Sequence record: PP793740.1
Length of the DNA stretch: 64,000 nt
Direction: 5' to 3' (one strand)
Every line of letters starts with the position of its first letter. The stretch's first letter is position 1. Under the pieces are notes generated by a model. That model saw only the letters and a list, made by a program, of their open reading frames with translations, had not been told where the DNA came from and searched no databases. Made by a program: the position numbers and the translations under genes. Shown piece after piece: positions 1,074 to 54,964 of this stretch.

Positions 1074-1203
1074 GATGGTTCCTCTTGTTAATCCAAGCCC
1101 ATTTGGGCGAAAATGTTGAGTATTTTTTACTCAACGGCATATAGCCCTACTGTTGCAGCAGTAGGGCTAATTCTTTTATTCTTAAATGTTTAACTGAATA
1201 AAT

Positions 1204-1225
1204 GCCCTCTCCCGAAGGAGAGGGC
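1204..1225. terminator. Intrinsic terminator
   Basis: GCCCTCTCC-CGAA-GGAGAGGGC followed by TTATGTCG. Confidence 0.7.
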
Positions 1226-1238
1226 TTATGTCGTTGAT

Positions 1239-1514
1239 TTATTTAACCAGCGATGGTTCCCTAATACGAGAGATGCATAGATAATTACTATAATCGCTAG
1301 GGTCGTACTCATCATACCCTAGACAACTTGTATGGATATATTCAGTACTGATATTAATCATATCAAGAGTAATACCATCACCCCATTTCTTAGTTGCCAT
1401 CTTGATAATATCGGCGATAGTATTGGCCACATAACAATCACCCAAGACATAAAAGGTATCTTCGGTATCATCCGGACGAAAATAACGAATACCATTCTGT
1501 GTATATTCACCCAT
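1239..1514 (-). CDS. Hypothetical protein (91 aa)
   Basis: ORF with GAGG RBS, co-directional with neighbours. Confidence 0.75.
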   Translation of the reverse strand: MGEYTQNGIRYFRPDDTEDTFYVLGDCYVANTIADIIKMATKKWGDGITLDMINISTEYIHTSCLGYDEYDPSDYSNYLCISRIREPSLVK

Positions 1515-1515
1515 G

Positions 1516-1659
1516 TTAATTATCCTCTTTTCCTTCTTGGGTATGATGAGCGGGCTCTACCCAGTAAAAATCAATAAACAGATCAACTGGTTCACAGCCG
1601 ACCGCCTCACTGTCATCGGCCCATTTACTTTCATCTGCGATAATTTCTTCATTGGTCAT
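1516..1659 (-). CDS. Small acidic protein (47 aa, not in the ORF track)
   Basis: Hand translation MTNEEIIADESKWADDSEAVGCEPVDLFIDFYWVEPAHHTQEGKEDN; AAGGAG RBS; fills the gap between genes. Confidence 0.65.
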   Translation of the reverse strand: MTNEEIIADESKWADDSEAVGCEPVDLFIDFYWVEPAHHTQEGKEDN

Positions 1660-1698
1660 TTGTATTTCTCCTTATTTACTATATTGAATATTGTTTAG

Positions 1699-1911
1699 TT
1701 ACATAGTCCAATTAGTGGCTTCATCAACCATGTCAGCTGCTTCTTTATCAGAAGCATTCCAGAGTTTATCAGCCCATTCTTTATCCATTTCATTTTGGAT
1801 ATTTTCAAGACGCATGTAATTATGCCATGCCTGACCCAGGCGAAGATTCTTATTATTTTTGTAATAAATTCCAAACTCACCACGAACTGATGCAGGAATT
1901 GAAATAGTCAC
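1699..1911 (-). CDS. Hypothetical protein (70 aa, GTG start)
   Basis: AAGGAG RBS; start overlaps the TGA of the upstream gene. Confidence 0.7.
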   Translation of the reverse strand: MTISIPASVRGEFGIYYKNNKNLRLGQAWHNYMRLENIQNEMDKEWADKLWNASDKEAADMVDEATNWTM

Positions 1912-2069
1912 TTTATAATCTCCTTAGTTACTATCTGACGTGCTTCTTTATAAGAAATATTCGGATTATCATTGATGTATTTAAGAACTTTCTGATGTAT
2001 AATGTTCTCTCGCTCAGTTAGTTCTTTTACTACTCTTTTAAAATAACCTGGTGATCGTTTCATAGTCAT
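1908..2069 (-). CDS. Small basic protein (53 aa, not in the ORF track)
   Basis: Hand translation MTMKRSPGYFKRVVKELTERENIIHQKVLKYINDNPNISYKEARQIVTKEIIK; overlaps both neighbours by 4 nt. Confidence 0.6.
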   Translation of the reverse strand: MTMKRSPGYFKRVVKELTERENIIHQKVLKYINDNPNISYKEARQIVTKEIIK

Positions 2070-2353
2070 GGTTCTTCGATTAACAAGTTATTTGCCTCGA
2101 AAAAGAATGGGGCTGACCAGCTATAATCTGGTTCATTTACCAGTTTTACACTGTTCTTGGTTTTGATAATCTTGCGATCATACCGCCAGTTTTGTGGTCC
2201 ATGTTTAGGAATAGTGTAGTATTCACCATCGGGTAGATTAGTGGCTTTTTCCCATCCGAGTTCTTTAATACTAAACTTTTTATCAGTTGTCATTTTCTTT
2301 ATTTCCTTGCTGTCATGAAACCACCCGGTGGCCGTATCAAGCTGCGTCCCCAT
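2066..2353 (-). CDS. Hypothetical protein, paralogue of 2649..2912
   Basis: Shared motif NLP.G.Y...P.HGP.....DR. Confidence 0.7.
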   Translation of the reverse strand: MGTQLDTATGWFHDSKEIKKMTTDKKFSIKELGWEKATNLPDGEYYTIPKHGPQNWRYDRKIIKTKNSVKLVNEPDYSWSAPFFFEANNLLIEEP

Positions 2354-2356
2354 GGT

Positions 2357-2641
2357 TTATACTGCACGTGGGATCACTGATATCTCAAGAGTCAGATCAG
2401 CCGCGTCCAGTAGGTTTACCAGGGCGTCCAGAGAGAACTTGTCAATCTTGCCTTTGAGAAGATCATTCAATCTCGGTTGCGTAACATGTAGGCGAGCAGC
2501 AGCGTCTTTTTGCGGAAGATCCCAGCCCTTTATAGTACGGGTGAGAGCCCGCATGAGTTGGGAACGGATACGTAGGTTTTCAGTTTCTTTTGTCGAGTCA
2601 ACTAGTGTATCCCAGACACCGGGAGTGCATTCGTTTGCCAT
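2357..2641 (-). CDS. XRE/HigA-like helix-turn-helix antitoxin homologue (HTH_37 type), orphan
   Basis: VWD.L.D...E.ENL.IRS.LM..L and Q..AA..LHVTQPRLNDLLKGKI.KFSLDALVN, typical of RelE/Gp49-associated HigA2-type antitoxins. Confidence 0.8.
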   Translation of the reverse strand: MANECTPGVWDTLVDSTKETENLRIRSQLMRALTRTIKGWDLPQKDAAARLHVTQPRLNDLLKGKIDKFSLDALVNLLDAADLTLEISVIPRAV

Positions 2642-2648
2642 TTATTTA

Positions 2649-2912
2649 TTACCTCTTGAGGTAAATGCTCGGATAATAAACTACATTATATTTAAAGAAA
2701 TCACTTACCTTGAATTTTATGTTCGGTGCAGTGATTAGATAACAATAATCACCATCAACCATAACGCGTCGATCATGGCTATATACCCTAGGACCATGTA
2801 ACGGAGAAGTTACATAAATTCCATTGGGAAGATTCCGTAAATCGTCTTTATTCAGAAACTTACCATTAGGATTTATAGTTAATGGATAACAACCAGGATT
2901 AAGTTTATGCAT
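2649..2912 (-). CDS. Hypothetical protein, paralogue of 2066..2353
   Basis: ORF with GAGG RBS; shared HGP motif. Confidence 0.7.
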   Translation of the reverse strand: MHKLNPGCYPLTINPNGKFLNKDDLRNLPNGIYVTSPLHGPRVYSHDRRVMVDGDYCYLITAPNIKFKVSDFFKYNVVYYPSIYLKR

Positions 2913-2928
2913 ATTTCACCTCTTTTAT

Positions 2929-2953
2929 AAACCACCCTTATATAGGGTGGTTT
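2929..2953. terminator. Intrinsic terminator
   Basis: AAACCACCCT-TATAT-AGGGTGGTTT with a T run. Confidence 0.65.
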
Positions 2954-2959
2954 TTTTTT

Positions 2960-3235
2960 CTATTGACCAATATACGTGCTGGTGTATAATTCAATGGTTG
3001 GTTTATGAATGGTCAGATTATATTTCTTAGCTAAATCATCAATATCCCTGGAACAATCAATGAATTTGCCAGTCTCTCGGTAGCGCATCACCCATGAACC
3101 CCGAAATGGTGCATCATCTAATGGATTAATACCATATTCACGACATACCACAATTGCTTCATGTCGTGGAGTAGCACCAGTAGTGACAAAGTGATTTTCA
3201 TAAACTGGGATCATTGATACATCTTTATTGCTCAT
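2960..3235 (-). CDS. Hypothetical protein (91 aa), paralogue of 4229..4480
   Basis: Start moved to MSNKDV, which follows a GAGG RBS; REYGINP...RG.WV.R...TG.FID motif. Confidence 0.7.
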   Translation of the reverse strand: MSNKDVSMIPVYENHFVTTGATPRHEAIVVCREYGINPLDDAPFRGSWVMRYRETGKFIDCSRDIDDLAKKYNLTIHKPTIELYTSTYIGQ

Positions 3236-3276
3236 AATAACCTCTCTAAAATTACCTGAAGGGATATGCATGATAT

Positions 3277-3774
3277 TTATTTTTGTTTTTGACTGATCAT
3301 GGAGGCATTGGTGAAGTAATATAACGCATGTTTCCAATCTTGAGGGTCATATGTGCACTTATGAGCAACCACATAATCACCATCAATTTTTTTGAACAAG
3401 TTTACCATGATCACCTCATCCATATCAGTCCCGTTATGCACAGTTTGATAATTCAGTCTCACCAACATGTCATCTACATTGGTTTTCAACTGGAGACCAT
3501 CTTTGAAGAAATCACGAACACCATCCATGATTTGTTCATTGCGAGACAGGATGTTTTCAGAGATCTGTTCGAACATACCCCTTGCACCGATCAAACGTAA
3601 TTGATCGTAATTGGGTTCACCCATGCAGATGGCCTCATCATCACGATTACACATCTTCTCCAGCAGAACGATAGGGTTATAATCCCAAGCAACCCCACCA
3701 GTTACAACAGAGGTCAAATAGCCATAGAGACTGAGTTCACTGTCACGCTCATTTGCAGGAATCATGCGGTTCAT
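3277..3774 (-). CDS. Hypothetical protein (165 aa)
   Basis: Start moved to MNRMIP, which follows a GAGG RBS. Confidence 0.7.
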   Translation of the reverse strand: MNRMIPANERDSELSLYGYLTSVVTGGVAWDYNPIVLLEKMCNRDDEAICMGEPNYDQLRLIGARGMFEQISENILSRNEQIMDGVRDFFKDGLQLKTNVDDMLVRLNYQTVHNGTDMDEVIMVNLFKKIDGDYVVAHKCTYDPQDWKHALYYFTNASMISQKQK

Positions 3775-3809
3775 AATTAACGATCCTCGTATTGGTGTTG
3801 CAGCATAGC

Positions 3810-4193
3810 TCAGCAAGTCTCTTGAGCTTTCTCAAAACTAGCCATCGAGCGGGTGCGCGCACGCTGTAGAATAGACAAGCCGTATTTTTTGAACTTCTTC
3901 TTGTGGATGAAACCAAGGCGTTCGTAGATGAAGTCTTTACGGTCGGCGCGAGGTTTACCATCAGCTACGATACCACGGTCGAAAAGAGCCCAGAACAGAG
4001 CGCTTTCATCATGCAGGTAGTTGGCCATTTCCTGAGGCCACTGAACTGCGCATAGAGCAACGATTTGTTCAAGTAAACCACTATCTGAGATAGCATAGTA
4101 CTCACGACCCTGAACATAGTTCATTTTGTCGAAGTTGCACATAGCCAGTCTGCCAGTACCCTGGTTGATTTTCTTTTGAATGTGTTCGTTCAT
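3810..4193 (-). CDS. Hypothetical protein (127 aa)
   Basis: ORF track; AATAGG-type RBS. Confidence 0.75.
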   Translation of the reverse strand: MNEHIQKKINQGTGRLAMCNFDKMNYVQGREYYAISDSGLLEQIVALCAVQWPQEMANYLHDESALFWALFDRGIVADGKPRADRKDFIYERLGFIHKKKFKKYGLSILQRARTRSMASFEKAQETC

Positions 4194-4228
4194 GGTTTGA
4201 CCTATTTTCAGATTTGGATTAATTATAG

Positions 4229-4480
4229 CTAGACGAAGGTATTGCGTTCGAATTGGATGGAATTACGTTCAACAATATCGTTGAGGTATTTATCATTGTC
4301 GATAAATTCCCCAGTGAGCATGTTACGCAGAACCCAGTTCCCCCGAAGTGGTATACCGCTGTTAGGGTTGATCCCGTATTCACGCATCAAAATCCGACGA
4401 TTGTGGTCAACACCTGGCTCCATGTAAGATTCACTGATAAAACATTCCACCATGTTGATAACTTCTTTAGATTCGCTCAT
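4229..4480 (-). CDS. Hypothetical protein, paralogue of 2960..3235
   Basis: Shared REYGINP motif; AAGGA RBS. Confidence 0.75.
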   Translation of the reverse strand: MSESKEVINMVECFISESYMEPGVDHNRRILMREYGINPNSGIPLRGNWVLRNMLTGEFIDNDKYLNDIVERNSIQFERNTFV

Positions 4481-4551
4481 TGACTTATTCCTTCTTTTGC
4501 AGGTATTATGTAATACGATAATGGATTATGGCTTTAACCATCAGATCCTTT

Positions 4552-4974
4552 TCACGCAGTTGGTTTGAATGGATTTGCACTACGACTACGTTTTTGATAT
4601 GAAATTAGTGCACCCCATACATTATCGGCTGATACATATTCAGGCATAGCTTTTTCATCATTGTAACTGACACGGTATGCCTTAGCCACACCTGTGCTAT
4701 CTACAATGTGAACTTTTTCAATGACAAATGCTTTTCCAGAAGGCCCAGGGATATGTAATCCTCTTTTAAAAAGTTCTTCAAGAATGCGTTCTAATGCAAT
4801 TTTAGCATTAGGGTAATCATTATCAAGTGACTTAATACCACCTTTAATTTTATTATCTAGGTCACTGAGTGCCTTTTTAAAAACACTAACATCATGATCA
4901 AAACATTCGAGAGTGTGATCGAAGTTTTGCATGAGCGCTATTAGTAGACCATTAGGAAATACTACTTTTGACAT
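4552..4974 (-). CDS. Hypothetical protein (140 aa)
   Basis: ORF track; AATAGG-type RBS. Confidence 0.75.
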   Translation of the reverse strand: MSKVVFPNGLLIALMQNFDHTLECFDHDVSVFKKALSDLDNKIKGGIKSLDNDYPNAKIALERILEELFKRGLHIPGPSGKAFVIEKVHIVDSTGVAKAYRVSYNDEKAMPEYVSADNVWGALISYQKRSRSANPFKPTA

Positions 4975-4984
4975 ATATCACCTA

Positions 4985-5341
4985 TTAGTAAACAGTTGGG
5001 AACGTTTGTAGGAACCAATCATTAATACGTGTATTAACACTAGCCCCGTGTTCAGGCGCTACTTTAAAACCAGCGACGATGTCCTGTAACTCTTCAGTGA
5101 GTTTGTTGTGTACTTTACCTTCACAATCGATAAAGTCTTCTGCGGTTGGCATAACCTCAGCGCGAATAACAGAGGCACGCTTAGAAAGCATTGTAAGAAT
5201 TTCATTAGACACTGAAGCAGCATTACGCAACTTATTGATTTTTACATCAATAACAGTTTTATGATAGATTTTACCAACTGCACACATTGTAACTGAACCA
5301 ACAAAAATACCAAGACAGAGTGATACTTTATCAATATTCAT
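4985..5341 (-). CDS. Membrane-anchored hypothetical protein
   Basis: N-terminal hydrophobic helix SLCLGIFVGSVTMCAVG. Confidence 0.75.
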   Translation of the reverse strand: MNIDKVSLCLGIFVGSVTMCAVGKIYHKTVIDVKINKLRNAASVSNEILTMLSKRASVIRAEVMPTAEDFIDCEGKVHNKLTEELQDIVAGFKVAPEHGASVNTRINDWFLQTFPTVY

Positions 5342-5402
5342 TTTGTATACCTATTTACGTTTATTGAAGTGATTAAAAAATAATACGATGTAGAAAATAA
5401 AA

Positions 5403-5420
5403 GGGAGTCCGAAGACTCCC
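5403..5420 (-). terminator. Intrinsic terminator
   Basis: GGGAGTC-CGAA-GACTCCC with an A-rich flank on the + strand (U tail on the - strand). Confidence 0.7.
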
Positions 5421-5428
5421 ATTATCAG

Positions 5429-5869
5429 TTACACATCTGACACATCATCGAACAGATCAAGTTGTTTCCGATTACGTCGTTCTTCTTCTTCGATACGACG
5501 ATTCTCTTCTTCAATCTCTTTCTGCCGTTTGACAAGCCTCCTGTGCAGACTCATTTGCCATGCAGTATCATAACGGCATCGCACTGATTCAATATATTTA
5601 AGCCCTACTTCATTAATGCTCTCAAGAAGATCCAGTGACACAAGTGTCTCCTTGGATGCATTAATGCTAGCCTTAAGATAATGGGCCATTGCTGTTGCTG
5701 GATGGAACGGTAGTTTATCGACATCCATGGTCTTTTGATAAGCTTTCAGTTTATGGATAATAATTCGTCCATAATAGAATTCATAGAGTTTTTCTCTAGA
5801 ATCCCAAGCAAGCTTACCGAGTACGGCTCCACTTACCATCCCTAATGTAAGAGATAGCTTAGAGTTCAT
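5429..5869 (-). CDS. Membrane-anchored hypothetical protein with charged coiled C-terminus (146 aa)
   Basis: Start moved to MNSKLSLTLGMVSGAVLG, which overlaps the upstream stop. Confidence 0.7.
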   Translation of the reverse strand: MNSKLSLTLGMVSGAVLGKLAWDSREKLYEFYYGRIIIHKLKAYQKTMDVDKLPFHPATAMAHYLKASINASKETLVSLDLLESINEVGLKYIESVRCRYDTAWQMSLHRRLVKRQKEIEEENRRIEEEERRNRKQLDLFDDVSDV

Positions 5870-6176
5870 TGTTAATTGCATCCTTAATCCAGTTACGGAT
5901 TTTTGATTTAATTCGATGTTTATCACTGATGGTGTTAAACATATCCAATCCATCATTAATAACGTATATAAGCTCTACTTCAATAAAGTCCGTCATTACT
6001 TCCACGGTGGTATTATCTGAATTAGATTTGATATAATCGGAATAGTCCTTTACTTTTTCACGGATATTCTTTTCTAATTTAATCTCATTATAAACAGTCA
6101 CACTGACTTCGAACACATAGATGGTACCAGCCAGCATGAGACCAGTTTTTACAACATTACCGATAATGGAAAGCAT
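5859..6176 (-). CDS. Membrane-anchored hypothetical protein
   Basis: N-terminal hydrophobic segment. Confidence 0.7.
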   Translation of the reverse strand: MLSIIGNVVKTGLMLAGTIYVFEVSVTVYNEIKLEKNIREKVKDYSDYIKSNSDNTTVEVMTDFIEVELIYVINDGLDMFNTISDKHRIKSKIRNWIKDAINNEL

Positions 6177-6221
6177 GATAATATCCTATTAGTTAATGAA
6201 TGTAGATTTATTTTGATTATA

Positions 6222-6383
6222 TTAAAACTTGATATTTAGAACACGTTTAGCTATTATAATACCAACATATACTCCTAGTGCTATCTCCGCATATTTGGTG
6301 ATGACGTTTTTAATCTTCTTATGTTTAGGTGCCTCGGGCACATCCGCGATAAGTTTTTGAAGTTTAACTTTATCAATATTCAT
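6222..6383 (-). CDS. Small membrane protein (53 aa)
   Basis: Start MNIDKV after AAGGA; C-terminal hydrophobic helix. Confidence 0.65.
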   Translation of the reverse strand: MNIDKVKLQKLIADVPEAPKHKKIKNVITKYAEIALGVYVGIIIAKRVLNIKF

Positions 6384-6491
6384 TTGTATTTTCCTTTTTA
6401 CGATTAATTGAAGGTTTAACAAACTCATTCAAATATAATTTTATTATCGTAATTATATTTGAATGGGGCCTCAGTGAGGCCCTATCCATTT

Positions 6492-6830
6492 TTACATCTT
6501 ACGAACTGTATCGAATACTTGATTCGTATAGTCATCGCCATAAATGATCGACAGCTTATTACGAATTACATCCAGTCGATGTTTTTCAATATTGCTCTCA
6601 GCAACAGCACTATCCATTGTCTCAGTCATTGCAGCATTGATGAACATCATGAACTCATCTGATTCACCATACTCTTTTGAAATACTTTTAAACTGATCCC
6701 TGAAACCCATGAGTTTGTCAAAGTTGGCTTTAGTCTCTTTAGCCTTCTTGTAGATAACATACCCAGTTCCAGCCAGTGATGCAGTGGCCAGAAGAAAAGA
6801 TACACCTTTTGCAATCGTATTGAATTTCAT
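6492..6830 (-). CDS. Membrane-anchored hypothetical protein
   Basis: N-terminal GVSFLLATASLAGTGYVIY helix. Confidence 0.75.
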   Translation of the reverse strand: MKFNTIAKGVSFLLATASLAGTGYVIYKKAKETKANFDKLMGFRDQFKSISKEYGESDEFMMFINAAMTETMDSAVAESNIEKHRLDVIRNKLSIIYGDDYTNQVFDTVRKM

Positions 6831-6864
6831 AATAAATATTCCTATTTACTAATATTAAAACTAT

Positions 6865-7311
6865 TTAATAGTTTCTGAAATGTTCACAAGTCGTTACTTC
6901 TTTCAGTCGTTTGATGATGTAATCTCGACTTTTATTGAATTGAAGTTTCTTTGCGTCATCCAGTTCATCCCATTGTGTAATTCTGGCCAGTTCAGGAACA
7001 TTGTCATATTTTGCTTTGTTAAGTTTTTTAATCATGTCCCATACATAGCAACCTTCGATAAACCACAAAAGACTCGTGTATGTATCCTTGTCAATTAAAT
7101 TTACTCCATAAAGACTAAGGTCAACCTTGGCTTCTTCTGCCATTTTAATGGTTTTCTTATAATTATCAAATACATTGTGGAGGTTATGCTCTTCGCCACT
7201 GCTATCACAGTTTTCAATAGCTTTCATCAACTCCGGAAATGTATCACTATAGAACTTGATCAATTTACGAGTAATCGCCTCTTGCACTTTCTGCTTTTTA
7301 GTCTTTGCCAT
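6865..7311 (-). CDS. Early hypothetical protein (148 aa)
   Basis: First ORF downstream of the early promoter at 7370. Confidence 0.75.
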   Translation of the reverse strand: MAKTKKQKVQEAITRKLIKFYSDTFPELMKAIENCDSSGEEHNLHNVFDNYKKTIKMAEEAKVDLSLYGVNLIDKDTYTSLLWFIEGCYVWDMIKKLNKAKYDNVPELARITQWDELDDAKKLQFNKSRDYIIKRLKEVTTCEHFRNY

Positions 7312-7369
7312 TTTATTTCCACCTATTTACATTAAGTTGTATGATAATGTTTACAGTATTGTCACAAAT

Positions 7370-7377
7370 GTAATATA
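7370..7377 (-). promoter_or_regulatory. phiKZ-type early (virion RNAP) promoter
   Basis: TATATTAC core preceded by ATTTTAAACAG on the - strand. Confidence 0.75.
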
Positions 7378-7409
7378 CTGTTTAAAATGGTTTGAATATA
7401 CGACATAAA

Positions 7410-7429
7410 GCCTTCCCCTGAGGGAAGGC
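7410..7429 (-). terminator. Intrinsic terminator after the macrodomain gene
   Basis: GCCTTCCC-CTGA-GGGAAGGC followed on the - strand by TTTATGTCG. Confidence 0.7.
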
Positions 7430-7434
7430 CAATG

Positions 7435-7923
7435 TTAAACCGATGAATCTATCCACGGTGGATAAACAACCACAATCTGGTTAGGCATGTGATTAGACCA
7501 ATCTTCAATGATAGTTCTAACATCAGAGAAATCTAATCCACCATTAGCACACCCTAGAGGTGGTATGATAATTTTCCAATCTGGATGAATACAGTCTTCT
7601 TCATTTTCCGCAGAATCCGATACGTTCTCCATCATCCACTCTAGACCACGTTCAATGAAACTAATTTGAGATGGGTTCCGCCAGTTATCCTTAGTAGGAA
7701 ACATCATGAAACGTTTACCATCGGATGCTTTGTAAATAACCGGATTACCAATAGTAATAATTCTCTTTTTGCAATCGTGTTTGTATCTTTCAAAAAGTTC
7801 AGGATACTTTTCTTTAAACGATTTGGCTAAACCAGCGCCCATGACGCCAACAACATTAACAGTGATTAGATAAAGATCACCAGGTACATTGAATATATCT
7901 TTACCTATAATAAATTCAGCCAT
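7435..7923 (-). CDS. Macrodomain ADP-ribosylhydrolase, DarG/TARG1(Poa1p)-like (phiKZ gp104 position)
   Basis: Motifs N..GVMGAGLA, FPTK..W..PS, PPLGC.NGGLD. Confidence 0.85.
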   Translation of the reverse strand: MAEFIIGKDIFNVPGDLYLITVNVVGVMGAGLAKSFKEKYPELFERYKHDCKKRIITIGNPVIYKASDGKRFMMFPTKDNWRNPSQISFIERGLEWMMENVSDSAENEEDCIHPDWKIIIPPLGCANGGLDFSDVRTIIEDWSNHMPNQIVVVYPPWIDSSV

Positions 7924-8003
7924 GATAATGGCTCCTTCTACAAGAGTACTAATGAGAAGATCAAAACATAGACCTTCTCATTAGATTGGGTGCATTTCCA
8001 GGC

Positions 8004-37582: not shown

Positions 37583-39109
37583 TTACATACCAGCTTTCTG
37601 CCGGAAGAAGTGTAGAACGAGTTGCCGTTTACCTTCAGGGATGAAACGTGCAAGATAGTTGATATCTACCTGATAAAGCGCATCTGATACATCACTAGTA
37701 AATAGGCAGAATAGAGTAAGAAGATTAATGTGTGCTTCTTGACGGTTATTCTGAGTAGGTAGAGTAGCAACAAAGCGAAGTGCGTTAGATTCACTAAATA
37801 GAGTATTACGATTTTTCTTAACGAAATCAAAGATAATATCCATGCCTGATTTAAAGCCTTCAATATCTTCGATTGTCATTACGTAGTTGAATACATCATC
37901 TAGTTTCTTTTGTGCATCGCCACCACGTTCGATAGTGATATAGTCACCAGGTTTAGCACCAGTGGCAAACTGCTCTAGACGAGATTCGATAAATACTTGG
38001 TTCATTTTGGTCATACCTTTACGAAGTACAGGTTCATTAGATGTTGATTCACTATTCAAGATTTTAACTTCCCCGGTTGGTTTAATATCATCTTTACCAG
38101 AGAATACTTTCCATTGTTCAACAATAGTTTCAATATCTTGACTAGTGGTAGGTAAGAATAAGCGATCGCGTAACTCAATAGCAATTTTAAAATCTTTTAT
38201 CAGATTACTATTTTTAATAAGTCCTTCAGCCCAGTCTTCAAGCTCTGCTGTCGTCCAATCGGTAGGTGGAGCATTATCACGAATAACACTATTAACCCAA
38301 CTACCACGTAGTGTTTTTGGTGGAGTAATACCTTGTTTAACAAAATCAACCACTTCTTGGGTAGACCAATCTAGTGGAATATCACTAGTGTGAATACGCA
38401 GTTGCTTGACTAATTCTTCAAGCTTGATACTGTCTTCAGTATTGCGAATATCTTGTTTCAGTGTATCTTCATTAACTACCGGTACAATTACTTCCTCAGT
38501 AGTCTCATTCTCTTTAGCCCGTTTAGTTAAAATATCATCAGCAATATCGGCGATATCATTAACTACACCAGTTAGACGATGGTTAGCAGCATCGATTAGT
38601 TCATCATCTGACCATTCATCATAAGGACGATATTTACGGGTTGGGTCAAATACAAAGTTGCCGAGTTCAGTTTTACCTTTAGCAGGACCACCTACAGATT
38701 CCCAAGCAGCAATGTCTTCATTGGTCCAGGATTCTGGGATATTGTAAGTAGTACGAATGCCTTCCCAATTAGGTTCGCCGTAAACAGCGCCTTCTGCAAG
38801 AGGAGTAGGTTCAGTTACTGACACATCGCCTTCCTGCCGAACAACATATTCTTTCTGGCCGTCTGTATTAGTGGCAAAGACGAAATTGCCGATGCTGGAG
38901 AGCCGTGGATCAAAAGCTGGTGCCGACAGACTTACGGTAGTCTTTTGGATGTCAGTTTGGGATACGTTACCATGCACCACTTCTTCTTTCTCAGTGGTCT
39001 CTACAACGGGTTCTTCTTTCGGAAGGTAGCCCACTTCGTCATATACTGCGATTTGCGGAGTCATACCACGTTCAGCACGACGGTTCAGATCAAAACGTTT
39101 CTTAGCCAT
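37583..39109 (-). CDS. Conserved hypothetical protein (gp81-like)
   Basis: 508 aa; internal repeats of the type IP..W...D/E....W; synteny. Confidence 0.7.
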   Translation of the reverse strand: MAKKRFDLNRRAERGMTPQIAVYDEVGYLPKEEPVVETTEKEEVVHGNVSQTDIQKTTVSLSAPAFDPRLSSIGNFVFATNTDGQKEYVVRQEGDVSVTEPTPLAEGAVYGEPNWEGIRTTYNIPESWTNEDIAAWESVGGPAKGKTELGNFVFDPTRKYRPYDEWSDDELIDAANHRLTGVVNDIADIADDILTKRAKENETTEEVIVPVVNEDTLKQDIRNTEDSIKLEELVKQLRIHTSDIPLDWSTQEVVDFVKQGITPPKTLRGSWVNSVIRDNAPPTDWTTAELEDWAEGLIKNSNLIKDFKIAIELRDRLFLPTTSQDIETIVEQWKVFSGKDDIKPTGEVKILNSESTSNEPVLRKGMTKMNQVFIESRLEQFATGAKPGDYITIERGGDAQKKLDDVFNYVMTIEDIEGFKSGMDIIFDFVKKNRNTLFSESNALRFVATLPTQNNRQEAHINLLTLFCLFTSDVSDALYQVDINYLARFIPEGKRQLVLHFFRQKAGM

Positions 39110-51538: not shown

Positions 51539-51901
51539 ATGGCATTCACACTGTTAGCTAATCAGCCAGATTCAGGTGAATCTGTTTATTATGAACCAGG
51601 GTTCAGATTAATTATTGAGACTCATTTGAATATCTTACGTAATGTCAGATCCACACGTATTCAAATTCCACCTGAACTGTATTACCAGTTCGAAGGAAAC
51701 TTTTATGGATACATGGCAGAACGCCGTGTCAATCCTGATATGTGGTGGATTCAAATGCGTGTTAATGGTTTAGTTAGCCCTTATGATTTTGGTAAAGTTC
51801 TAAGGGATCCTTCAGCTAATGATTACACCAGCTATTTAATCATACCGAATAACGACATGATTCAACACCTCGTTAGCTTATATCAAACTAAAAAGTTTTA
51901 A
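51539..51901 (+). CDS. Putative baseplate protein, T4 gp53/LysM-like
   Basis: FYGY......D.WWI.MRVNG...P.DF pattern. Confidence 0.55.
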   Translation: MAFTLLANQPDSGESVYYEPGFRLIIETHLNILRNVRSTRIQIPPELYYQFEGNFYGYMAERRVNPDMWWIQMRVNGLVSPYDFGKVLRDPSANDYTSYLIIPNNDMIQHLVSLYQTKKF

Positions 51902-51907
51902 AGCAAG

Positions 51908-51931
51908 CCAGGGGACCCTTAGGCCCCCTGG
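51908..51931. terminator. Bidirectional terminator
   Basis: CCAGGGG...CCCCTGG followed by TTTATGCCG. Confidence 0.65.
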
Positions 51932-51942
51932 TTTATGCCGTG

Positions 51943-53334
51943 TTACAGTAGACGACCCATCATTTGGTTTCCACCTAGATTCATCATCGCGGTGTTACCA
52001 TTACCAGCTAGAGCGGGGTTTAGTGCTTGTGCAAATCCACCACCCATCGGCATTTGATTGCCCATGAGTTGCATCATTTGCGGGTGCATATTAGCCATCA
52101 TTGGCTGCTGTGGCTGCATCATCCCAGGCATTGCAAAGTTATTGTTCATCATAACAGGTTGTTGCATCATTCCGGGTTGAGCAAATTGGTTTTTCTGCCC
52201 AGCGTTTAGAAGATCTTGGATAGATGCTTTATTGCTAGTTTGAACTTGTTGTGCGGGACGTTGAGGTGCCTGAGTCATTGCTACAGCTTGACTCATAGAT
52301 GGATTAACATTCACAGTTGTGCCTACTGGTACACGTGTAGAAGTAGTTTGTTCTTTAGCAGTATTACCCACTTTAACTACACTATCCTTTTTCTGGACAG
52401 GAATTTGGGCAACTGGGTTTACAGTTTCAGAAGCTTCTTCTTCTACTTCATTGCTGACTCCTTCATTACCATCAAGAGAGGGGATCTCACGTTGCATCTT
52501 TGCAAAATCAGCAATCACCTTCTCATCAACTTTTGAATAAGGTTGAATAGCATCATCGAAGATCAGGCGATACTTATCAATAACACTATTTAGTTGAGTA
52601 GTGATTTTGTTAAATGCCTGGATAAGACATACAAAATAAGGTGCTACCCGCTCAACTGTTCCTGCTGAATATTCAGTTGGTGAATCACCAAATGGTACAA
52701 CTAGTTTAAATAGTTCGATTAGAACTGGCCGCTGTTTCTTAGGTACATTTACTCCAAGGATATCATCTTTAGAATAAAGATCCTCTACGATAGGGAACCG
52801 AATAACGCAGATACGGTTAACTGTCTTCCCATCAAATTTACCATTTGCTTTTAGATACACGCTTACAAAACGTGAACGTTTTTCAGCAGCTTTGACAACC
52901 TTATTAAACCACTCAATGGTATCTGGCTTAGCACCGGATAGTTTCTTTAGGAAGTCTGAACATTCTGGTGGAATGTCTTTATGCAGAGTGGAGTCGGCAG
53001 CTACTTCTAAAATACGTGAAGTAAGATACTTCACAGTAAACATTAGATTAGCCTTAACTTGACGCTGCATATGCTGTAGTACTTGAGAAGTACCTAGCCG
53101 AGAGATCTTTTCAGATAGCGGGTGGAAGGCGATGTAATCATCGCCTAGCCCTTTACGAAGCCAATCTTTAGTAGGTACCACTAGTCGCTTACCATCTACC
53201 TTTGCAGGTGCAGGTCGACCAAGTGGATCGAGAATACTGATCATATCCTCTTCACCTACTTTGTATCGGAAAGCAGGTAATACTTGATCACTATAGAACT
53301 TGGAAAGAGAAATCGTAGGCATTGTTATCACCAA
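51943..53334 (-). CDS. Nucleus-associated protein with Met/Gln-rich disordered tail (phiKZ gp70-like)
   Basis: Synteny after PicA; low-complexity C-terminus. Confidence 0.7.
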   Translation of the reverse strand: MVITMPTISLSKFYSDQVLPAFRYKVGEEDMISILDPLGRPAPAKVDGKRLVVPTKDWLRKGLGDDYIAFHPLSEKISRLGTSQVLQHMQRQVKANLMFTVKYLTSRILEVAADSTLHKDIPPECSDFLKKLSGAKPDTIEWFNKVVKAAEKRSRFVSVYLKANGKFDGKTVNRICVIRFPIVEDLYSKDDILGVNVPKKQRPVLIELFKLVVPFGDSPTEYSAGTVERVAPYFVCLIQAFNKITTQLNSVIDKYRLIFDDAIQPYSKVDEKVIADFAKMQREIPSLDGNEGVSNEVEEEASETVNPVAQIPVQKKDSVVKVGNTAKEQTTSTRVPVGTTVNVNPSMSQAVAMTQAPQRPAQQVQTSNKASIQDLLNAGQKNQFAQPGMMQQPVMMNNNFAMPGMMQPQQPMMANMHPQMMQLMGNQMPMGGGFAQALNPALAGNGNTAMMNLGGNQMMGRLL

Positions 53335-54964
53335 ATTTAGGATTGATTTGAGCAGGTTGAGCTACAGGATGTTGATACGGTTGCATGTTAACCGGCTGAC
53401 CACTACTGTTTAGAATGTTTTGTTGAGTCTTAGTTGGGATAACATTCTTAACAAGATAGGTAAGGTCATTAGAGATCATAGCCGGTGCAGATGCATCCCG
53501 AGTAATGACTGGACTAAACAGACTATCAATGAAGGTCGGTGCGATGAATCGTTCTACCGATTCATGATTTAGACTGATATCAATAACAGTATCACCAGCT
53601 AAGTCAGAGTGCATGGAAATTTTAAACGGAATCTGGTTACCATAAGAGATACTGTTAATCGCATCGGTAATAAGACGACGTTCAAAGTCATTAATCTGTG
53701 GAGTCATATCAATTCCATCCATGATACTCCTGGTACCATTTGGATGCATTTCGAATAGATAGTTATTCGCTCCATGTCCATTTGTAATTGCAAAGGAGGT
53801 TACCCGGAAATAGTTATCCATCATGATTGCTGGAACTACTTGTGCAAGTAGAGATGCTGCAACAGTGTGATGATCTGCACCACCCCAATGCATGGAATGC
53901 TCTGCTCGGTTAACGAAGCGTTGAGAATTACCATTATCCATACCAGCTTTAACTACACCATCAACCAGTAGTTCAGGGAATACTCGTTGTAGGTCAGCCA
54001 GTGTAACAAAGCCACGTTCCATGTAATTGCAGCGTTCTTTTAGAATGCGCATGAACATATTGGAATGGATATCTTGATTTCGAAGTACAGCTGATGCATC
54101 ACCTAGCATCACTTCATCAGAGACACCTCCAAAGATATTATCGTTATCATTATTAGCCATCTCAGCTTCTTTAACAGAATGCTGCCATGCATTAAGAGTA
54201 CTAGATAGATAACGAGTAGGAGAAGTATCACGGCGATTTGAATATTGGAAAGTACCTGCTTCACCAACACTGGAACGTTGATCAATGATCCGGTCAAATA
54301 CACCTTGATGTAGTCCAGTTGATTCAATGCGTTTAGCTACTTGCATCGTTTGCTGAATCTGGAAAACATCTTCTGGCCGTTGGAGATATGATGAAGTTCC
54401 AGTATACATGCTAAACCCGTTCTGAGGGATAGTAATATCACTCATGATATCGACGGGTGCAAGGATCTGGTTAGAACCTAGGATATGTGCTTGTTTAACC
54501 ACACCAAACTCAGTTGGTCGTTGACGCTCTACAATAACAGTTTCACTATTAAAATAGATACGCATGTTAGGATCTAGACTATTGCTAAGCGGACTAATAG
54601 AGCAATGGTCAGAGCAACCAAATAGAATCCGGCAAGTACGGGTATTACCAAAGAAACGGTTATTCTCCCATACTTTCATCATGAACCTAAACCGGCGTTC
54701 ACCCCAACCATTGACGATAGGGACTTCGCCTTGAGTTTGAGCACGTGGTGCGATCACATCAGCTGCAATTTGCTGTACAGCTGCAACACCTAGATTACGA
54801 CCATCATTAGTTGCTTCTTTTAAACGTTCAATAGAGTTCTCAGTGACCTCTACAGTAAATGGTCGAACATGTTCAGGTTGATAAGTACCAGTTTGTACTA
54901 GAATGAATGATTCAATCTGTACTTCAGTATTACCGCCCATTGCTGAATTATTAAAACCTAACAT
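53291..54964 (-). CDS. picA: Phage-nucleus protein import factor PicA/Imp1 (phiKZ gp69)
   Basis: Lies directly after gp68 in the conserved chimallivirus block. Confidence 0.75.
   Translation of the reverse strand: MLGFNNSAMGGNTEVQIESFILVQTGTYQPEHVRPFTVEVTENSIERLKEATNDGRNLGVAAVQQIAADVIAPRAQTQGEVPIVNGWGERRFRFMMKVWENNRFFGNTRTCRILFGCSDHCSISPLSNSLDPNMRIYFNSETVIVERQRPTEFGVVKQAHILGSNQILAPVDIMSDITIPQNGFSMYTGTSSYLQRPEDVFQIQQTMQVAKRIESTGLHQGVFDRIIDQRSSVGEAGTFQYSNRRDTSPTRYLSSTLNAWQHSVKEAEMANNDNDNIFGGVSDEVMLGDASAVLRNQDIHSNMFMRILKERCNYMERGFVTLADLQRVFPELLVDGVVKAGMDNGNSQRFVNRAEHSMHWGGADHHTVAASLLAQVVPAIMMDNYFRVTSFAITNGHGANNYLFEMHPNGTRSIMDGIDMTPQINDFERRLITDAINSISYGNQIPFKISMHSDLAGDTVIDISLNHESVERFIAPTFIDSLFSPVITRDASAPAMISNDLTYLVKNVIPTKTQQNILNSSGQPVNMQPYQHPVAQPAQINPKFGDNNAYDFSFQVL

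Follow-up and report, generated by a model that had tools for sequence, protein, structure and literature searches.

We have analyzed a stretch of 64,000 nucleotides of the sequence record PP793740.1 (the window in what follows). Its positions 1500 to 4500 matched Pseudomonas phage vB_PaM_W10-2 with 100% identity and, in reverse orientation, phiKZ with 99.3%. The product of the gene at 2357-2641 was 100% identical to PHIKZ114 (NP_803680), here called gp114, which carries in GenBank the labels "HTH DNA binding protein" and "XRE family transcriptional regulator". The features of the locus are the following (coordinates of the window):

2357..2641, minus strand: gp114 (PHIKZ114) coding sequence, a 94-aa HTH_37 antitoxin homologue with an ATG start and without a toxin partner
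2579..2641, minus strand: codons 1-21 of gp114, the N-terminal arm with VWD.L.D...E.EN, predicted to be disordered in isolation and with a presumed role in toxin binding (pLDDT below 50 for residues 1-15)
2456..2512, minus strand: codons 44-62 of gp114, the helix-turn-helix proper, with predicted helices 44-51 and 55-62 (AF2)
2642..2659, minus strand: imported leader with ribosome-binding site, overlapping the last codons and the stop of gp113 (from blastn homology)
2649..2912, minus strand: gp113, a phage gene of 87 aa, paralogue of gp115 (phrog_10237, E 4e-38)
2066..2353, minus strand: gp115, 95 aa, paralogue of gp113 (phrog_10237)
2929..2953, no strand assigned: G+C-rich hairpin (stem of 10 bp) in the gap separating gp112 from gp113
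7435..7923, minus strand: gp104 (PHIKZ104), the AdfM macro-domain protein (Pfam Macro; position match to PHIKZ104)

The match of gp114 to the Pfam family HTH_37 (PF13744) had an E value of 4.6e-28 and 97.3 bits (the curated gathering cut-off is 27 bits) and spanned residues 14-89, corresponding to profile positions 3-79 of 80; no model of NCBIfam or PADLOC matched the protein. The GC content of the gene was 0.491 versus a mean of 0.372 over the 285-nt windows of the stretch (z = 3.06), a level reached in only 0.19% of such windows. Two GC peaks, at 38751-39035 and 51901-52185, were considered as comparable islands and rejected, both being located within long genes. The only other small gene of the window with a similar GC (about 0.50) is gp110 (3810-4193, minus strand), which has no Pfam match and may be another acquired gene.

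In an early accessory block, gaps of 7 nt and 3 nt separate the gene from its two neighbors, which are gp113 upstream and gp115 downstream as transcription runs. The two flanking genes are related to each other (32% identity over 59 aa, E 2e-11 by BLASTP), gave no Pfam match and belong to a phage-only family of unknown function. We considered gp113 as a hidden toxin and this was ruled out, given the lack of a Pfam match or of significant similarity to Gp49 toxins and its membership, with gp115, of that phage-only family. Another paralogous pair is formed by gp112 (2960-3235, minus strand) and gp109.1 (4229-4480, minus strand), with 38% identity over 56 aa (E 2e-15); the early block comprises these two duplicated pairs of small genes of unknown function. 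The intergenic gaps from gp104 to gp116 contain perfect or near-perfect G+C-rich hairpins at 1204-1225, 2929-2953, 5400-5423, 6460-6488 and 7410-7429. The one at 2929-2953 has a run of T on the plus strand and a run of A on the other side, and coincides with a change in the published RNA level at 2 min from 474 (gp112) to 245 (gp113). It is a possible attenuator ahead of gp113-gp116. The gene for AdfM is found 4.8 kb away, on the strand that also codes for gp114 and in the same early block.

The initial annotation of this DNA had described a 94-aa HTH protein of elevated GC, placed between two paralogous phage genes and with no RelE-like toxin gene adjacent. Our data agree with it on all these points: the HTH_37 match is full-length, the hand count of 60 G+C among the 120 nt of 2401-2520 is exact, and both neighbors are the phrog_10237 genes just mentioned. 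The HigA2-type pattern that was also proposed stood as regards the VWD.L.D...E.EN motif, which is indeed present. The name HigA2 did not, as the protein of Vibrio cholerae was not recovered by our searches (see the comparison at the end).

The pattern at the N-terminus of gp114 (V9 W10 D11. L13. D15 ... E19. E21 N22) is a motif of the whole family, and the residues V9, W10, L13, E19 and N22, all kept by gp114, were invariant in an alignment of 57 sequences. The core of the second HTH helix (T54-L58 and L61) was likewise invariant across the family with the phage copy included. Codons 44-62 showed few substitutions relative to the bacterial homologues and, over residues 44-78, the sole difference from the P. 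aeruginosa antitoxin was D46. The AlphaFold model of gp114 had a mean pLDDT of 84.6. It consisted of residues 1-15 with no confident structure except for a short helix at 9-13, a long helix at 17-39, the HTH at 44-51 and 55-62, another helix at 71-80 and an extended tail past residue 80. Among the fold matches listed, the top ones were 2A6C and 2O38, which are uncharacterized HTH_37 proteins, followed by HipB, M. tuberculosis HigA2 and S. pneumoniae HigA. By analogy, residues 1-39 of gp114 would be the toxin-binding part.

In contrast with the HTH, the arm of gp114 has changed. In comparison with 55 bacterial sequences, gp114 had 8 unique residues, all of them within positions 5-20 and none in the other 73 positions. 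Among the columns conserved in at least 90% of the bacterial sequences, 6/18 had changed in the first 21 residues versus 2/38 elsewhere (Fisher p 0.01). The same asymmetry appeared within the phage lineage, with a pN/pS of 0.48 for codons 1-21 and of 0.07 for codons 22-94 (2 nonsynonymous versus 10 synonymous differences in the latter). In the toxin-paired homologues the arm is nearly invariant. These changes may reflect retargeting of the arm, or its decay with the loss of contact with the ancestral toxin. Seen against the constraint on the HTH core, they weaken a reading of gp114 as a toxin neutralizer. A drifting arm next to a frozen HTH core also provides a clean natural case of the fate of an antitoxin after the loss of its toxin.

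We have searched for the relatives of gp114 outside phages. The nearest proteins have also 94 aa and are 80-81% identical; they are found in P. aeruginosa (WP_023122028 among them), P. nicosulfuronedens and Pseudomonas sp. PDM19, and beyond them there are hundreds of Pseudomonas proteins at 65-75% identity. At the nucleotide level the Pseudomonas genes are 78% identical to gp114 over 293 nt. In all the genomic contexts read that had upstream DNA (13/13), a gene of the PF05973 (Gp49) family coding for 108-109 aa was located on the same strand about 106 nt upstream, that is, the toxin comes first. NCBI names this partner "type II toxin-antitoxin system RelE/ParE family toxin"; in NCBIfam and PADLOC it gave only a sub-threshold match to the RelE/ParE model TIGR02683 and weak NsnC matches. 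The paired contexts were situated on islands or plasmids, beside integrases, Rep3 or ParA. We screened the upstream DNA of the species-representative genomes with a toxin HMM. It was long enough at 76 loci, and at 63 of these the toxin ORF was in place; among the others there were one toxin remnant and one ParE-type gene instead. In IMG/VR viral contigs 15 of 19 loci were toxin-paired, a Phikzvirus and two AT-rich contigs being among those that were not. The relatives in Mycobacterium prophages are annotated as an antitoxin adjoining a RelE-like toxin.

Several database entries need care. A 380-nt contig of an assembly labelled 'Agrobacterium sp.' (L027) is 100% identical to gp114, and entries filed as 'P. 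aeruginosa' or 'Klebsiella' (P0002-P0004 and P0040; 92-99% identity) come from short contigs or from one of 281,755 nt. All of them are phage DNA filed under bacteria. An assembly with the label 'Enterobacterales bacterium' (L005 / L028, JBKYMN010000013.1) has a Pseudomonas-type module with an integrase and an MvaT-like gene beside it; either an island has moved or the bin is mislabelled.

In the tree, the phage clade was nested inside the Pseudomonas clade. Its sister group consists of two metagenomic sequences with 82-86% identity, and the one whose contig is long enough to tell is toxin-paired. The homology detected by blastn starts 15-18 nt before the ATG, including the ribosome-binding site, and stops 7 nt short of the ORF end. 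Thus, it is confined to the coding sequence and the leader belonging to the spacer between toxin and antitoxin in bacteria. No Gp49-like ORF was found in the window, nor in the Pseudomonas phage records, nor by the toxin HMM among the six-frame ORFs of the 279-kb genome of W10-2, which was read in separate pieces for the pattern and HMM scans. The possibility of a toxin remnant in the phage was also rejected, since tblastn and a two-round toxin HMM gave only fragments with best E values of about 3-5. The GC of gp114 (0.49) lies between that of the nearest bacterial copies (0.55-0.58) and that of the phage (0.37), as would be expected after some time in the phage; at third positions it was 0.45 versus 0.56-0.61 in the nearest bacterial copies.

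The 80% identity, the nested clade, the homology limited to the gene and the lack of a toxin all indicate that the transfer went from a mobile toxin-antitoxin module of Pseudomonas to the phage, and the absence of any toxin sequence together with the limits of the homology indicate that the antitoxin gene came across alone. We attribute the capture to an ancestor of the genus Phikzvirus, with the toxin left behind. With no Gp49-like ORF adjacent, in the window or elsewhere in the phage, gp114 is to be considered an antitoxin homologue and not part of a module, and lacking both an adjacent toxin and an operator it is an orphan. The suggestion of a captured antitoxin, made in the initial annotation, has therefore gained strong support: judging from the sequence comparisons, gp114 appears to be a host-like orphan taken from a RelE/Gp49-type toxin-antitoxin module.

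The gene was present and intact in 47/47 Phikzvirus records (93-100% identity), including phage lineages with a dS of 0.21. PhiPA3, a related nucleus-forming phage, has no HTH_37 gene and a single homologue of gp113/gp115. The phiKZ type of gp114 differed from the fMGyn-Pae01/OMKO1 type by 13 synonymous and 7 nonsynonymous changes (dN/dS 0.16), the pattern of a gene retained under purifying selection in Phikzvirus. Orphan HTH_37 genes appear also in the large virulent Pseudomonas phages HRDY3, pf16 (gp179) and Lu11, with only 38-51% identity to gp114, which points to separate captures. These copies and those of the AT-rich IMG/VR contigs resemble gp114 in having an HTH_37 domain, about 95-105 aa and no Gp49 toxin nearby. 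Those of HRDY3, pf16 and the two AT-rich contigs lie at L017:2486-2776, L018:2462-2779, L124:1453-1761 and L125:581-835, respectively. The N-terminal VWD/VWN motif is kept in HRDY3 and in L124, the HRDY3 copy having a diverged HTH. Unlike gp114, the copies of pf16 and of L125 are devoid of the VWD motif.

Published data on phiKZ allow us to follow the expression of the gene. In the RNA-seq of infected PAO1 cells (source data of Fig. 3b), the PHIKZ114 values at -2, 2, 4, 6, 8 and 10 min were 0.6, 502, 1096, 1346, 1662 and 1792 (PMC10914614). This profile is that of the known early genes gp5-gp23, unlike gp1-gp4 (3-25) or gp118 (2-4), and the whole block gp103-gp116 behaves in the same way (PMC10914614). 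The RNA of gp104/AdfM was already at about 258 units at 2 min in these data (PMC10914614), yet the gene has been described as late (PMC13309987). The protein gp114 is listed in a size-exclusion proteomics (SEC-MS) table (PMC10449902). Regarding its need, the transposon insertions recovered in the 285 nt of gp114 on PAO1 were at 13 and 22 sites in two supplementary data sets (PMC12676376, supplements 2 and 3), whereas essential phiKZ genes had none (PMC12676376). This places gp114 among the most insertion-tolerant genes and makes it dispensable on PAO1, a host without the module. The transposon reads in gp114 were about 90,000, 50-70 times those of its neighbors (PMC12676376, supplements 2 and 3), an excess due either to a jackpot clone or to disruption giving a growth advantage on PAO1. 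In the literature that we searched, PHIKZ114 or gp114 is not mentioned by name in any main text, its data being found only in supplementary tables, and no paper names a proteic HTH antitoxin homologue of a virulent jumbo phage in a counter-defense role.

The explanation that we favor, to which we give about an even chance of being right, is that gp114 is a working captured orphan antitoxin that would act as a conditional counter-defense against Gp49-type toxins. The virion RNA polymerase would make its transcript at once on infection, and the protein would stay in the cytoplasm as a dimer, held presumably by the HTH core and the C-terminal tail. The N-terminal arm and the long helix 17-39 would then bind Gp49-type mRNA-cutting toxins, those of some hosts, borne by islands, plasmids or prophages. 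As infection halts the supply of the short-lived antitoxin of the host, gp114 would take its place in blocking the toxin, and the phage mRNA, translated outside the phage nucleus, would remain uncut. The benefit would be limited to hosts with such a module and gp114 would be neutral elsewhere. The early transcription, the dispensability on PAO1 and the nearby AdfM are consistent with an accessory role in counter-defense. Counted against the antitoxin reading are the lack of the motif in pf16 and L125, the rarity of the closest module in P. aeruginosa (4-6 contigs, with no species representative of P. aeruginosa among the best 80 loci) and the absence of Gp49-HTH_37 modules from the defense systems catalogued in PADLOC v2.

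Constraint is far stronger on the HTH core than on the arm, which makes co-option as a DNA-binding regulator a real rival. The antitoxin role would have been lost, and gp114 would be a small HTH factor binding phage or host DNA early in infection. We consider this possible and rather unlikely. In its favor are the low pN/pS and the invariant residues of the core, the drift of the arm, the orphans of pf16 and L125 that do without the N-terminal motif altogether, and the GenBank annotation as a transcriptional regulator. The search for binding sites provided little for such a factor. Eight bacterial modules, with otherwise poorly conserved promoter regions in diverged loci, have in common, about 160 nt ahead of the toxin gene, the palindrome ATATC-N6-GATAT, extended by conserved flanks and a central AAA, and this is likely to be their operator. 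At 0 mismatches, the extended palindrome was not found anywhere in the 279 kb of the phage, and in particular the conserved bacterial palindrome was absent as an autoregulatory operator upstream of gp114. The bare core occurred 4 times versus about 1 expected, never near gp114 (the sites are L023:45721, L023:19311, L024:48522 and position 54435 of the window; that at L023:45721 sits between two genes). In the gp104-gp116 block (1200-8000) there was no recurring operator-like palindrome, only the G+C-rich intergenic hairpins. Besides, a regulator of this kind fits poorly with the tolerance of gp114 to insertions on PAO1 and with a phage that is transcribed by its own RNA polymerases in a shielded compartment (PMC8244752). 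A role restricted to the block itself, with gp114 damping the small accessory genes around it (gp113, gp115 and others) in the manner of the Aca-type HTH proteins to which anti-defense operons respond in other phages, is decidedly improbable. The tight packing of a small HTH gene in an early accessory block is what one would expect of it. However, neither the block nor gp113 has an inverted-repeat operator upstream, other than the terminator-like hairpin, the nearest relatives of gp114 are toxin-paired antitoxins and not Aca families, and the RNA of the block is still rising from 2 to 10 min.

The near identity of codons 44-78 to the P. aeruginosa antitoxin, and the conserved palindrome upstream of the toxin genes, would also suit a gp114 that sits on the operator of the Gp49-HTH_37 module of the host and halts the synthesis of the toxin without binding the toxin protein. 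In type II systems, though, the toxin protein is already present in complex, so that repression alone could not prevent its release once the antitoxin decays. In addition, phiKZ degrades the host chromosome early (PMC13309987), and a mere repressor would have no reason to keep the anchor residues of the N-terminus. We regard this as improbable. Finally, gp114 might be a neutral passenger, a recent transfer that does nothing for the phage, as its atypical GC, its dispensability on PAO1 and the unusually high transposon read count could suggest. Of all the readings this is the one to which we give least credit, very improbable in view of the selection data, which contradict it: the gene is intact in all the Phikzvirus records, diverged lineages included, with the dN/dS values given above (0.16 overall and 0.07 in the core). 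It is also transcribed early and strongly and its protein has been detected.

Returning to the captured antitoxin, nucleus-forming jumbo phages shield their DNA and are translated in the cytoplasm, which makes RNA-cutting toxins a plausible weak point for them. A wider idea, which we put forward only as a doubtful speculation, is that phiKZ-like phages keep a small early set of stolen antitoxins, with gp104/AdfM directed against DarT and gp114 against Gp49/RelE-type mRNA cutters, the fast-changing arm being a retargeting surface that tracks the toxins of different Pseudomonas islands and plasmids. In that case gp114 would be the first example shown of a proteic type II antitoxin homologue at work for a nucleus-forming phage, in which the mRNA is what stays exposed outside the nucleus. 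Phages like phiKZ are used in therapeutic cocktails, and knowing which host modules they can neutralize helps to explain which strains they infect.

Comparing gp114 with known systems, the closest are the Pseudomonas Gp49-HTH_37 modules themselves (toxin and antitoxin WP_023122027/WP_023122028, and WP_138526774/WP_138526773 in P. nicosulfuronedens). Their antitoxins share with gp114 the length, the degree of identity at both protein and DNA level, the N-terminal motif, a nearly unchanged HTH core and a homologous ribosome-binding leader. The differences are that gp114 has neither a toxin gene nor an upstream operator, that the early transcription of the phage replaces the promoter of the module, that its GC has come down to 0.49 and that its arm carries the 8 unique residues.

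Among solved structures, the HigBA pair of S. pneumoniae (PDB 6AF3/6AF4) was the only named one indicated by both partners, being the best named PDB match with E values of 0.017 for the toxin and 0.55 for the full-length antitoxin profile (not significant on their own) and a fold TM of 0.55. It is very distant in sequence, and 2A6C and 2O38 are closer folds. Its layout is that of gp114, with an N-terminal toxin-binding part, a central HTH and a C-terminal dimerization tail; in S. pneumoniae HigA the N-terminal strand and helices 1-2 contact HigB and the C-terminal strands join the dimer (PMC7984235). The similarity to V. cholerae HigA2 is only general, the common idea being that of a disordered arm at the N-terminus for toxin binding, with an HTH dimer after it (PMC7984235). 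With the profile of 57 sequences it gave no PDB match at E <= 1, the PDB including 5JAA (PMC7984235), and it was absent among the 50 fold-search matches listed. The 'HigA2' of the fold search is the unrelated protein of M. tuberculosis (TM 0.48).

As an antitoxin-like gene without a toxin in a virulent phage, gp114 resembles in this respect the orphan counter-defense genes represented by Dmd, AdfA and AdfM. Phage-borne antitoxins or antitoxin mimics are already known (Dmd, pseudo-ToxI, AdfA and AdfM), and gp114 would be a new, hypothetical addition to them. AdfM of phiKZ, like AdfA/AdfM of T4 and Dmd, is a phage antitoxin without toxin, accessory and required only where the host has the matching toxin. 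It is a DarG2-like orphan antitoxin that enables phiKZ to infect strains carrying DarTG2 and sets in this way the host range of the phage (PMC13309987). Hence, phiKZ already owns one validated stolen antitoxin, a few kilobases from gp114. The two families are unrelated: AdfM is an enzyme that reverses the ADP-ribosylation of DNA inside the phage nucleus, whereas gp114 would need to act in the cytoplasm, by binding a toxin that is a protein. As the second orphan antitoxin of phiKZ, it would belong to a far commoner class, the protein-binding type II antitoxins, with clear bacterial partners for examination.
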